A stretch of DNA of 63,625 nt, filler included, from Choristocarpus tenellus KU-1152 (lineage: Eukaryota; Protista; Phaeophyceae), in the NCBI GenBank assembly GCA_964200185.2. It is 11 parts of 11 records of this genome, joined end to end, with 100 filler letters (N's around TTAATTAATTAA, not from the genome) between each part and the next. Parts side by side here need not be neighbours in the genome. Positions count along the whole stretch, not along the records: positions 48,335 to 52,787 come from CAXNAD020014480.1; 10 more parts are not named here. One strand, 5' to 3'. The number at the start of each line of letters is the position of its first letter. Position 1 is the first letter of the stretch. The notes beneath the pieces are model-generated. The model had not been told where the DNA came from, made no database searches, and saw only the letters and a program-made list of their open reading frames with translations. Shown one piece after another: positions 48,235 through 52,787 of this stretch. The position numbers and the translations under genes were made by a program.

Positions 48235-48766
48235 NNNNNNNNNNNNNNNNNNNNNNNNNNNNNNNNNNNNNNNNNNNNTTAATTAATTAANNNNNNNNNN
48301 NNNNNNNNNNNNNNNNNNNNNNNNNNNNNNNNNNGGGGAAGAAAAGGGGGGGGGGGGGGTGGGGGGGGGGGGGGGGGTGTGGGGGGGGGGCTAGAGTTCG
48401 GTCATTCATGAATGGACGTGATTTGGAGGTGTGCGACCGAAGGTGGTGTAAAAACGGCAACCTTATTGTGGCAAACGTTGAACACACGGCGGATCCAACA
48501 CTTATCCGCAAGGCCCATAGTCTTCTACACGATGCATTTGGGTGCCGCATTAGATACATTCGGACTCGGGAAGAAAAAAAACGTGTCTACTGCGTGCCAA
48601 GAGCGTGACTCTGCCCTACGTTGTTGACAGATATGTTACGAAGTGCATTCTATGCCAGATTTACCTCGATCTAGTAGCCGAAGTCCGTCGCCGTCTTCGC
48701 AACGAAAACGGTCGCCTCATCGCGTCCCATTGCCTTTCCCTGAGGATTGATGGTCTCAGTAAAACA

Positions 48767-51700
48767 TCACTGCGTCTCAATTGGGACGAGGGTCTGCCCC
48801 AAGGCTTCCGGCAGGCAGGAAGGGCCTATCACGCGTTCTTGAACAAGAGACGTGGATACCTGCAACATCATGTGCGTACATGTGACAGCCCAACCATGTG
48901 GCATTCCAGAGTTTGCCATGCGATAAGGTTACGTCATGTACGTAGGGGTTATTCTGGCGTTAGTTCAATATCTTGAGGTGTACCGCAGCACGTTGTTTTT
49001 TCGTGTGGGGATGGAGGACAGTACAACGTACCGACACTCACACACAAAGTCGTGGGGTCTCGCGATTTCCGTTTGTGGTGTGGGTCACTGCGTGCACCGT
49101 GTTAGCAACGTATAAACATGGACAAGGAAACATCACTACCACAACCGCACGCCCGACAAATATCCGTAGCGAACGAAGACAGACAGTAAGTTGGAAAGAA
49201 ATGGAAAAAAGTCAGCACACCCTTTTACCTTCCACTTGCCGTCCTTGTAGGCTTGGCCGAAGGAGGTCTCCATCTTCTCTTTCACATCGTCCTTTGACGC
49301 CGCATTGGACACGAACACCTCCACCCTCCTGCTCCGTTCAAGGGACGTCTCCGTCACGTTGTTCCTCTCTGCGTTGAAGGAGACGACGGTGTCCCCAGGA
49401 TTCGTGTACCTATCATAGGAGGGCGAGTCGAAAATTATCCCGAGGAGTACATTGTATTGTGCACGGATTCATCATATGGCAATGTACGAGTAACGTACTG
49501 ATTCAGGGCAACACACTCATGGTGCGGTTTGACCTGTAACGTACTGATTCAGGGAAACACACTCATGGTACGGTTTGACGCCCCTGAACCATCACCCAGC
49601 TTGTTGCCTTACTGTTTAACGATGATCTACACCTATACGAAAAAAGTCGTTGCTCCCGTGAACAAGGGCGTGTGTGACGTAATTAACAAACCTGTTAACG
49701 AGGAAGTGGAGGCCCCTCATGGGGATGTCCGTTGCAGCACCTTGGTACTCGACGTCACACATGGTTTGGAGCACCGGAGGAGATGGATCACTCCCGTGGC
49801 CAAAGATGTCGTCGACGGTGACTCGCTTGTTGTACGTGAACTCTGTCCCATCGTTGTGCGCGAGAAGAATAATGTCCTGACAACATCTGAGATGGTTATC
49901 AGTGCCTGCGAGAGGTCGCCCCCCCCCCCTCGTCTTGTGCATTGTAAGTAGGGGATGATCTTCCACAACCAAGCCCACCTTCGATGCCATAAGAGCCCCT
50001 GAATGAAGAGAAGGCGGGAGCGAGCGCGTGGGTCTGGCATGCGTTAAACTTGACAGTGACAGCACACAAGTACGGTATCGTTGAGCTTCACGAAATTGCG
50101 TACCACTAACATAATAATAGTATAACAAGGGTGGAACGCAAGCCAAATAACAAATGCAAAAATTCAAACAATAGGAAATTCGTTAATAGAAGGAAAGACG
50201 GCAAAAAAAAGTAGTGAAGACAAGTAACACCAGCATGCGATTCGCGGACAATCAAACAAAGAACTACGAAGGACCCGGGGGCAAAGAGCAAGAGACACAA
50301 AAGGAAATACAAGGTACGAAGAAGATAAAACAACATGGGGAAAGCGAAAAAAAAAGACACACGACAGAATCCGCATCTCCTGAACGGCCGCCACCGTTTC
50401 CGATGGACACACGGGCGGACTGATAACGACTATGGCGGATTGCAATAGTCTCCCACAATACACCCCGTATTTCCGCGCTGGCGAGCTCTGCAACTCACCG
50501 TGTAGGCGGTGTGATTGCACGGCCCACGGGTGGGGCACAAATAGCGTGATGGTGCCCTGAGGATGTAACTTAACCTGCAAGTACTTCATCACCTGGCGCA
50601 AGTGGGTGTTGGTCGCCTCTTCGTCGTTGAGGAGTCTTGGCTCGGTGGTGATGGACACTATGTCGAGCTTTGGGGCGTTGCGGAAGGCGAACTCTTTCAG
50701 GCCACCTAAGGGTAGTGTCGGGTCGAGAGGGCGAAGGTCGTGTAGTGCAGTGTTCTCAGCCCTGGTTGGACATCATGACACATGACACAGTACACATACA
50801 GCACGACAAAAAGGACAGCATCGTAAACAATGGTGCAGGCAATTGTATCATTAAGTGAGGACCTGATAATTTTTCCCGGCATCCCCAAAATGTTAAGCCG
50901 TACCCTCCACAACGCCAGACCCATCAGATACATCTCGTGGAAGGAGGGGAGATGTCAGACAGGTAAGTTCAATGGCCCATGGAAACCTCCAAAAAAATGC
51001 CATACCGAACACACAAAGGACGAGCAATCCACATGATGTACAACCAGCCAAGACCCACGTGCAAACCAAAGCGAAGCCGAACACGCAGAGACGACTTGTA
51101 TGTCCGTAAATGTGCAACCATGCCAAGACCCATATGCACTTCTCCATGTCCGCCGTTTCGTTGCGTGAGGGGGGACGTAAAGGGCTTTGCCTGCTGGGTG
51201 ACCCGCCCGCACTCCTTGCGTTACGTTTACCCTTACCCTTGCCCCTGCCCCGACCCGTCGCTGCATTCCCCATCGGTCCAGTCCCTTCACTGCCCTCCTG
51301 TGCCACGGGGCAATTGATAAACAATCGATCCTTGTGCCTCTCGTCGCCCACAATCTCCACGTTGGCACATTTGCCCATGTGCGTGATGGAGCACTTTGGG
51401 CAGGAATACCTGCCGCGCGTGGCATAGAATGAGAGCGTCAAACAGACAGAACATCATTTTTTCAAATCATTAATTGGGCGCAACAACGCAATGCGGGGAT
51501 CCACGGCTACGACGGACCCCAAAATTGGCGGCACAAAACAATACGAAGTACAGGTGAGATACAACAGTCGGTTGCGACATGTACTAAAACACTCGGGCTG
51601 TGGCAAACAAAGAGACCTGGGGGTAGCGACTGCAGCACCACACACAGAGGGACCCCGCGACATCCACCGGTGTGGTGGCATGCATTGCTGAAGCAAGACA

Positions 51701-52787
51701 ACTTAGTTAGCCGTTCGGACGATCGGATGAAAACCAATCTTACGCCATTAATTACCCGCCTTCCGCATGTGCACCATTACAACTATATTACTCACCGAGC
51801 TGTAGGTGGAGGATTGCATTCAGTACAGCAAACGCCCGCATTCCACCCTCCATGGCCGTTTTGTTCGTCTTCCGCACCAGGAACGCTGTCAACAGAACCC
51901 CCCTCGCCTGTATCCTCCCTGTCTGGCAGTCTGTCCCCTCCCTCATCTTCGTCCCCTCCTTTGTGCTCGCACCCTCCCTCATCTTCTTTCTCCCCGCCAT
52001 CTGATGCCGATCTGTTGTTGCTCTCGACGTCGGCCCCGCCACCATCACCGCCCCGCCTGCTGTGGACCTGATGGAGGTTGACCTGATTGAGGACATCCTG
52101 GTATTTCCCATCCCAGGTGGTGAGGTAAGCGCGTAGCGTTGAGTCCTTCTGGAGAATCTGGTGGTGGACACGACAGAGAACATTGTTGAGGAGAGGAGGG
52201 GACGGTGGTGACGTAAAAAAATGGGAGAGTGTAGTGGAAGAGCGGTAGCATGTCAATCGAGCAGAGCATACGATACGGTTGAGGTGGTTAACACATCTAA
52301 TGGAGGCGGCTTGCGGGGCGAAGTAGTTTGAAATAAGTCATTGTCGAGGATGCCAGCCTGTCTGTAGGTTATGACAGTGACACATGTTGGAGGTGGGAAC
52401 GAGGTACAGATTGGCCAAGATCTTGTCCGGAGTTGAAGGCAACGGTTGGCTATTCTCGCTTTTAGCAATGAAAGCTGAGATCTGACAAAACAACATCGTT
52501 TGTTGTAGGGAAGGCAACTCTGTAGCTCGTGATGATGACGAAGATCCACCACTAATCCTAGATACGTTAACTAACTGTTGTTGTACAAGCCAGCACAAAT
52601 GTAATTACGAACACAGGAGGCACGTTCACGGCTCTGACCTATTGCAGAGGTTTCATCCCGACTACTGACGAGATATTTGCCCTCAGCTGCTGGACGGGCC
52701 CCGCTTGTTGGTCGCCAGATGAAAGCTTCTGCAGAAGTTGGGCCACCTCCATCTTCCTCTCCTCGTGGTGGGACTTGACTCAGACCT
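48767..52787 (-). pseudogene. Spliced gene: acidic region, PHD-like finger, basic linker and a degenerate beta-class N6A/N4C DNA methyltransferase-like domain
   Basis: The last four exons (50761-50499, 49998-49692, 49409-49229, 48859-48767) are GT-AG, phase-compatible and stop-free. They encode KLDIVSITTEPR...LQVKLHPQGTITLFVP...HPLLTMHK...LRCCQDIILLAHNDG...IPMRGLHFLVNRYTNPGDTVVSFNAE...SRRVEVFVSN...VKEKM. Upstream exon-like blocks carry in-frame stops (TGA 51456-51454, TAA 50895-50893). Confidence 0.65.

Follow-up and report, generated by a model that had tools for sequence, protein, structure and literature searches.

The window analyzed here is a stretch of 63,625 nucleotides of DNA from the brown alga Choristocarpus tenellus. 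One of its pieces, at positions 48,335-52,787 (CAXNAD020014480.1), carries on the minus strand a damaged copy of a highly repeated, intron-bearing gene, four of whose exons are predicted to encode the fold of a beta-class DNA methyltransferase. All exon positions given below count along the whole window. A sequence-only reading had proposed these four exons (50761-50499, 49998-49692, 49409-49229, and 48859-48767) as phase-compatible, free of stops, and joined by GT-AG introns, and this description holds. Each exon is preceded by AG, the first three are followed by GT, their lengths are 263, 307, 181, and 93 nucleotides, the phases chain as 1/2/1/0, and the in-frame translations run without stops. 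In tblastn comparisons (E 1e-22 to 1e-48), each exon is matched with the same boundaries in a paralog contig of C. tenellus (L002, 82-90% amino-acid identity) and in a 1-Mb European Nucleotide Archive contig from another organism (L001, 57-63% identity), and the four exons are therefore far beyond chance.

Exon structure and extent of the gene

The exon boundaries are common to three paralogs and three orthologs, and the junctions recur among paralogs, with the splice dinucleotides of the four exons all kept in L002, L005, and L006. An unrestricted HMMER search of the representative set with exon 2 returns 37 proteins at E<=1e-3, mostly single-exon fragments that end or diverge at the exon 2 donor. 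The exon 1-2 junction is present in the annotated brown-algal protein P0022, and the exon 2-3 junction in P0001 and P0004. An annotated Scytosiphon promiscuus protein of 590 residues (P0044) is collinear with the whole piece and is 52-66% identical to it per exon. As far as can be judged from these alignments, the introns are spliceosomal and conserved across brown algae, in agreement with the earlier proposal that the gene had gained such introns. No RNA run containing the stretch was found, and the two runs found are DNA.

The gene extends past the four exons in both directions. Three further exons lie upstream of exon 1 within the piece, placed by means of P0044, L001, and the Scytosiphon locus L003, and one of them (51409-51134) gives the first codon its two missing bases in exon 1, which had been mistaken for the start of the gene. 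At the other end, the frame of exon 4 runs past the TGA at 48769-48767, previously taken as the gene end, as far as 48665, with similarity to P0044 residues 335-389, and the donor GT directly after 48665 is kept in L003 and L005. The features are as follows:

52787-52630, minus strand: upstream exon E0, truncated where the piece ends (its start lies at or beyond 52787); collinear by tblastx with L003 8677-8850 and L001 7310-7469; donor GT after 52630.
52157-51796, minus strand: upstream exon upB, an open frame with an acidic/Gly-rich linker ending in a Cys cluster; matched by tblastn and tblastx to L001 8282-8677 and L003 9195-9580.
52159-52158 and 51795-51794, minus strand: acceptor AG and donor GT of upB, read from the sequence.
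51409-51134, minus strand: upstream exon upA, with a Cys-rich and a basic Gly/Lys stretch; matches P0044 residues 1-74, L001 8966-9253, and L002 486-818.
50761-50499, minus strand: exon 1, N-terminal half of the methyltransferase-like domain, with strand 4, the motif IV slot TTEPR (50649-50635), and strand 5 (secondary-structure register from the AlphaFold2 model of the ortholog P0044).
49998-49692, minus strand: exon 2, the central/target-recognition region and most conserved part of the family, with an 11-G run at 49929-49919.
49409-49229, minus strand: exon 3, the motif X/I region, with YTNPGDTVV (49408-49382), the FxGxG slot FNAER (49378-49364), strand 2, and the next helix.
48859-48665, minus strand: exon 4 in its true extent, from in-frame similarity to P0044 and the conserved donor GT after 48665.
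48410-48335, contig end: poly-C tract (poly-G on the plus strand), outside the gene.
In relatives: C-terminal domain, at P0044 residues 399-586, L001 11834-12403, and P0043 residues 246-386.

In P0044, upA is joined directly to exon 1. The C-terminal domain of the orthologs follows exon 4, spans about 190 conserved residues (55% identity between P0044 and L001), and falls beyond the end of the present contig; it has no Pfam match, and an AlphaFold2 model built from 3 sequences gave a predicted local distance difference test (pLDDT) score of 32, which is unusable. In the upstream exons (51796-51830 and 51340-51409), a conserved series of cysteines runs CCxxC, then CPxC, another Cys, and a CP pair, and it is also found in L001, L002, L003, L005, and L006. 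This cluster looks like a small zinc-binding module, and it has no Pfam match. Three adjacent gene models of S. promiscuus (93 residues, 145 residues, and P0044 itself; L003 6643-13679) line up in order with a single gene in both L001 and the piece, and probably represent one gene split by annotation.

The poly-C tract at 48335-48410 is probably an assembly boundary; in the layout of the DNA runs, 48335-48396 is flagged as a skipped repeat with reads apparently cut. Long poly-C/poly-G runs stand at contig ends and beside assembly gaps in two brown-algal assemblies (at 48335-48410 here, and near 780, 17750, 18093, and 24790 in L004), and are probably a sequencing or assembly artefact, not biology.

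A methyltransferase fold without its catalytic motifs

The fold was assessed on the ortholog P0044 (residues 66-345 or 73-345) and on exon-wise references, in place of the joined exons of this copy. The ESM Atlas model of residues 73-345 matches only clusters of PF01555 (N6_N4_Mtase), with template modeling (TM) scores of 0.65-0.68 over about 220 residues, and several of these are phage ParB_N fusions. An AlphaFold2 model of residues 66-345, computed from a 40-row family alignment, reaches a pLDDT of 78 and a predicted TM score of 0.79. Its top Foldseek matches in the PDB are all beta-class enzymes (E 8e-10 to 1e-5), with M1.HpyAVI the best (E 8e-10), followed by TTHA0409, CcrM, M.MboIIA, the bdelloid N4CMT, M.BceJIV, M.PvuII, and M.RsrI. 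The three enzymes that the sequence-only reading had named for such a comparison (M.RsrI, M.MboIIA, and M.PvuII) are thus all among them. VIA-align gives Z 18.9 for M.BceJIV (205 residues, root-mean-square deviation (rmsd) 3.1), 18.6 for CcrM, and 15.9-17.7 for the other beta-class enzymes, with the MT-A70 enzymes clearly below at about 13, and an Atlas shape search with the AlphaFold2 model again finds only PF01555. In the model, the elements follow the beta-class order (motifs IV-VIII, the target-recognition region, X, and I-III) on a Rossmann-type fold. These models confirm the beta-class (circularly permuted) N6-adenine/N4-cytosine DNA methyltransferase fold of bacterial or phage type as the predicted product of the exons. 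The prokaryote- or phage-type origin first suggested from the sequence fits as well, since the nearest structural neighbors are bacterial and phage enzymes, ParB fusions included.

Profile searches recognize none of this. Neither Pfam nor NCBIfam gives a methyltransferase match for any exon at E<=10 or for the full-length homologs at E<=1, scores stay below the PF01555 gathering threshold, and the HMMER check proposed with the four exons, run exon by exon and on the homologs, came back empty. PHROGs holds nothing for four full homologs, Pfam holds nothing for the upstream exons, antisense open reading frames, or C-terminal domains, and the family profile has 0 matches at E<=10 among PDB sequences. 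With hhalign, the family segment NRYTNxGDTV...SAER pairs with SSNPGDIVLDPFAGS in E. coli YhdJ (E 1e-3, probability 21%), and the N-terminal half gives no alignment to the same protein (E 0.44-0.73). Statistical support at the sequence level is limited to the motif X/I block around YTNPGDTVV. Thus, of the series of colinear motif blocks that had been proposed, the X/I block stands on sequence, the DPPY block has no sequence-level support, and the others are recovered through structure only.

Some candidate relatives were set aside. Three weak ribosomal-protein matches on exon 3 in Pfam/NCBIfam lie far below the cut-off. P0006 (5477 residues), P0028, and P0029 are bacterial He_PIG/fn3 repeat proteins that match exon 2 residues 25-69 in 19, 8, and 6 stretches, respectively; P0006 has the best E-value of the search, and all three look like chance resemblances, weak matches being summed over repeats. 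Pattern scans of IMG/VR and the JGI metagenomes with P0044 and with the exon-2 alignment found no viral relatives.

The replacement of DPPY by TTEPR (50649-50635) and of FxGxG by FNAER (49378-49364) is as originally described, and both motifs are lost in every family member examined. With the register taken from the secondary structure of the P0044 model, the slot after strand 4 reads ITTEPR/TTEPR in this copy and GAEPR, AAEPR, AADQT, TSEIA, GAYPE, or GAFQG elsewhere in the family; it never conforms to (D/N/S)PP(Y/F/W) among the members examined, is unconserved, and lacks an aromatic residue in most of them. The FxGxG slot reads FNAER here and LSAEK, FSAER, FGAEH, CGESN, GVEST, or GVETT in other members, with the Glu conserved in all. 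As hhalign sets SFNAER/SLSAER opposite DPFAGS of YhdJ, the motif I glycines are replaced, and in the subfamily of this copy both are missing. In beta-class methyltransferases the ribose of S-adenosylmethionine (SAM) is bound by an acidic residue with which strand 2 ends; by the register of the model, this position is Ser-Asn in the present subfamily, whereas L010 and L011, two divergent homologs, have Asp or Asp-Glu there. The best-conserved residues belong to the central/target-recognition part (GGRP, HLR, LLAH, and FTCNKRVTxDD) and to the helix before strand 1. The paralog search did yield paralogs (L002, L005, and L006), and family members with canonical motifs IV and I, which the sequence-only reading had asked to be looked for, turned up in none of the searches. 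With a variable DPPY slot and, in place of FxGxG, a loop whose Glu is conserved, the whole family has probably lost SAM binding and catalysis, the DNA-facing parts being retained.

Lesions of this copy and copy number of the family

Exon E0 contains an in-frame TGA at 52782-52780, where orthologs have Trp or Tyr, and an in-frame TAG at 52641-52639, where they have Arg. The donor after upA (51133-51132) reads AT through a G-to-A change at 51133, versus GT in L001, L002, L003, L005, and L006, and no in-frame alternative donor/acceptor pair was seen for it in the sequence. In exon 4, the TGA at 48769-48767 stands for CGA in L005 and CGC in L003, and a TAG at 48673-48671 stands for CAG and GAC, respectively. 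The four stops and the donor change are absent from every paralog or ortholog covering each site. Since the exon 4 frame continues with ortholog similarity up to a conserved donor, the TGA at 48769-48767 is not a natural end, and it is a nonsense change at a former CpG. Four in-frame stops together with a destroyed splice donor mark this copy as an unprocessed pseudogene, its introns retained. The earlier statement that the gene had kept its frame thus holds for the four exons only, the lesions lying outside or just beyond them.

Of the four copies compared, three are damaged: besides the present one, these are L006, in which a stop interrupts exon 1 and 1 bp is deleted from the 11-G run of exon 2, and L002, which lacks 4 bp of that run. 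L005 is intact over exons 1-4. The 11-G homopolymer (49919-49929) encodes a Gly run before RP, and is a hotspot for frameshifts or else a site of misassembly.

The changes private to a single copy (49401-52337, compared with L002, L005, and L006) are mostly C-to-T and G-to-A, which amount to 43-60% in the three paralogs, and a quarter to a third of the private changes fall at ancestral CpG. Each of the five disabling changes in this copy is a transition of this kind or consists of two of them at a single CpG. The observed/expected CpG ratio of the piece is still 0.91.

Two DNA runs yield 2345 and 2708 short unitigs at 90-99% identity over 4.4 kb, and since these cover the introns as well as the exons, the gene is a high-copy repeat. 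Summed word depth is 1e3-1e4, versus about 9 (run X1) or 23-28 (run X2) for unitigs that match the piece exactly, a sum that indicates an order of magnitude and is not itself a copy number. There are dozens of sequence variants per position and, to an order of magnitude, roughly hundreds of copies. Paralog contigs are 83-88% identical in alignments that span exons and introns alike, so that the family is multi-copy at the DNA level with its introns retained. Between the piece and L002, the exons are 90-92% identical, the introns 82-89.5%, and the ratio of nonsynonymous to synonymous substitution rates (dN/dS) is 0.50, a pattern that fits copies derived from constrained master genes and decaying later.

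Probable place of the family among ParB and methyltransferase genes

A distant subfamily in Ectocarpus (P0042, P0022, P0025, P0041, and P0043) is 30-35% identical to this copy and has the same linker, methyltransferase-like domain, and C-terminal domain, and several of its copies are 90-100% identical to each other. The N-terminus of P0042 contains a DGAHR motif, and its Atlas model resembles ParB_N/HTH_ParB, including ParB-methylase fusions (TM score 0.32-0.48 by query, up to 0.66 by row). In protein-language-model features, P0042 residues 1-345 (locus L004 10001-16330) come closest to fungal DUF3723 clusters (score 0.93-0.94, 162-169 shared features), DUF3723 being an accessory gene of the Starship giant transposons. 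There is no Pfam DUF3723 match in this N-terminus, and the likeness is a lead only. The flanks of L004 are assembly gaps, and inverted repeats considered there turned out to be runs of N.

We regard it as probable that the locus is a pseudogenised copy of a highly repeated, intron-bearing gene with a dead beta-class methyltransferase fold, belonging to the class of ParB plus DNA methyltransferase accessory genes of transposons. The family is placed in this class because it combines a prokaryote- or phage-type fold, a ParB partner, multiple copies, and retained introns. The intact protein would consist of the linker with its Cys cluster, the beta-class fold, and the conserved C-terminal domain, to which the distant Ectocarpus relatives would add the ParB-like domain at the N-terminus. 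Its methyltransferase-like domain would descend from the bacterial or phage PF01555 type. Following the loss, throughout the family, of motif IV (DPPY) and of motif I (FxGxG turned into a loop with a conserved Glu), this domain would most likely be unable to bind SAM or to methylate, and may serve as a DNA-binding module, whether scaffold or reader. The family would be carried as an accessory gene on giant algal DNA transposons, which would explain its amplification at the DNA level with introns intact, and we prefer to extend such carriage to the subfamily of this copy.

Several points weigh against this reading. The ParB-like motif was not found upstream in L003 or L008, which belong to the subfamily of this copy, and the piece itself ends before that region. 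No transposase, terminal inverted repeat, or target-site duplication was seen, and the piece and the other Choristocarpus copies retrieved all sit on contigs of 2.7-4.4 kb that hold the gene only. The Scytosiphon ortholog in L003 lies about 1 kb from host genes (a 2-oxoglutarate oxygenase, an Arf GTPase, and an RNA-recognition-motif protein) and resembles a resident gene. Catalytic death is deduced from motifs only, a dN/dS of 0.50 for one pair of copies speaks for some constraint in the past, and the presumed identity of the Ectocarpus homologs with the accessory gene of the published transposon Sola1-1 follows from architecture, length, and copy number, compared by description.

Part of this evidence would suit an ordinary host gene family, perhaps anciently domesticated from a mobile element and expanded in Choristocarpus by segmental or tandem duplication, with no transposon carriage. 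The host genes around the Scytosiphon ortholog and the absence of a transposase nearby agree with it, as do the sharing of the gene alone, without flanks, between loci of different species, and the intron positions conserved from Choristocarpus to the Ectocarpales. However, a host gene would not usually show dozens of variants per position or a depth ratio that points to hundreds of copies, three of four compared copies are damaged, the Ectocarpus relatives are also multi-copy, and a gene with this architecture is already on record as the cargo of an Ectocarpus transposon (PMC12477816), so that we consider a host family less likely. An intact, functional gene of just four exons ending at the TGA at 48767 would be compatible with exons that are open and correctly spliced on paper, but it is already contradicted and scarcely credible: exon 1 begins in phase 1 and needs upA, whose donor is AT in this copy alone, ortholog similarity persists in frame past the TGA, and E0 contributes two more stops.

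The two remaining alternatives concern activity. Non-catalytic partners of active methyltransferases exist, METTL14 being the partner of METTL3 and MTA9 that of MTA1, and a DNA-binding subunit of this kind, working with an active paralog in real DNA methylation, would account for a well-preserved fold whose conservation is strongest in the central/target-recognition part; chains of MT-A70 heterodimers also occur among the weaker structural matches. Yet no search yielded a family member with canonical motifs IV and I that could be the active paralog, and nothing here points to an interaction, which makes such a role improbable. Less probable still is an enzyme that remains active by means of unconventional active-site and cofactor-binding residues. 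The Glu of the motif I loop is conserved family-wide, the NPGD-like block before strand 1 is kept, and the published Ectocarpus accessory protein is predicted to make N4-methylcytosine (4mC) or N6-methyladenine (6mA) (PMC12477816), but the motif IV slot is unconserved even within the family, both FxGxG glycines are missing in this copy's subfamily, and PF01555 is matched neither by single exons at E<=10 nor by full homologs at E<=1.

The accessory-gene reading has consequences of its own. Canonical cytosine methylation is thought to be lacking in most brown-algal lineages, and how these algae discriminate transposons is an open question. If the reading is true, the family would be a concrete case of a mobile-element accessory protein that binds DNA instead of modifying it. 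The published idea of self-modification by algal accessory proteins would then need qualification, at least this subfamily being probably incapable of it. A bolder extension, which we offer as a long shot, is that the conserved pseudo-methyltransferase would be a sequence- or modification-specific DNA reader, and that, together with a ParB-type clamp or nuclease and the new C-terminal domain, it would allow a brown-algal mobile element to recognize its own copies, to mark them out, or to partition them; at its furthest, the idea is that the protein itself would mobilize a single-gene DNA element without any classical transposase. For annotation, the family shows that many of the short “unnamed protein products” in Phaeoexplorer genomes are exons of one repeat family.

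This kind of gene has already been described in algae, a precedent that the sequence-only reading had missed: the 21.5-kb giant transposon Sola1-1_Ec32 of Ectocarpus carries, opposite its transposase, an accessory gene for a 1104-residue ParB-like plus DNA methyltransferase protein, predicted to make 4mC or 6mA, and it has been suggested that such proteins epigenetically modify their own element (PMC12477816). The new details are that this subfamily is degenerate and invisible to Pfam, and that it has been massively amplified in a brown alga that branches early. The family resembles the Sola1-1_Ec32 gene in being brown-algal, multi-copy, and intron-compatible, with a DNA methyltransferase domain of prokaryote type, and the Ectocarpus homologs P0042, P0025, and P0043 add the N-terminal ParB-like domain and reach a combined length of about 1100 residues. 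It differs in having neither a PF01555 match nor motifs IV and I, and the subfamily of this copy, 30-35% identical to that of Ectocarpus, has no ParB part found.

Several eukaryotic methyltransferase clades have been traced by Iyer et al. to phage ParB-Tls loci, and inactive methyltransferase domains were described in DIRS1 elements in the same study (PMC4738411). The phage and prophage ParB_N-N6_N4_Mtase fusions (PF02195 plus PF01555; PMC4738411) are the nearest structural neighbors of both the methyltransferase-like domain and the Ectocarpus ParB-like N-terminus, and share their domain order. Unlike the algal genes, which contain introns and have degenerate motifs, they are intronless, keep DPPY and FxGxG, and are recognized by Pfam. 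The acidic/basic linker, the Cys cluster, and the extra C-terminal domain also set the algal family apart. M.BceJIV, CcrM, M1.HpyAVI, TTHA0409, M.MboIIA, M.RsrI, and M.PvuII share the permuted Rossmann-type fold over about 200 residues (Z 15.9-18.9, rmsd 3.0-4.0), although sequence identity is 8-16% and the algal family lacks the catalytic and cofactor motifs. The bdelloid rotifer N4CMT (PDB 8s9m/8s9n/8s9o; PMC8885841) is likewise a eukaryotic beta-class amino-methyltransferase of bacterial origin (Z 16.2-16.8), but it is active and fused to a chromodomain, while the algal domain is without catalytic motifs and has other partner domains. Finally, the DIRS1 methyltransferase domain (PCIF1-like) and METTL14 (MT-A70) belong to clades other than beta-class PF01555, and DIRS1 is an intronless retroelement polyprotein, yet both resemble the algal family in a methyltransferase fold kept after the catalytic residues were lost, in DIRS1 inside a mobile element (PMC4738411).

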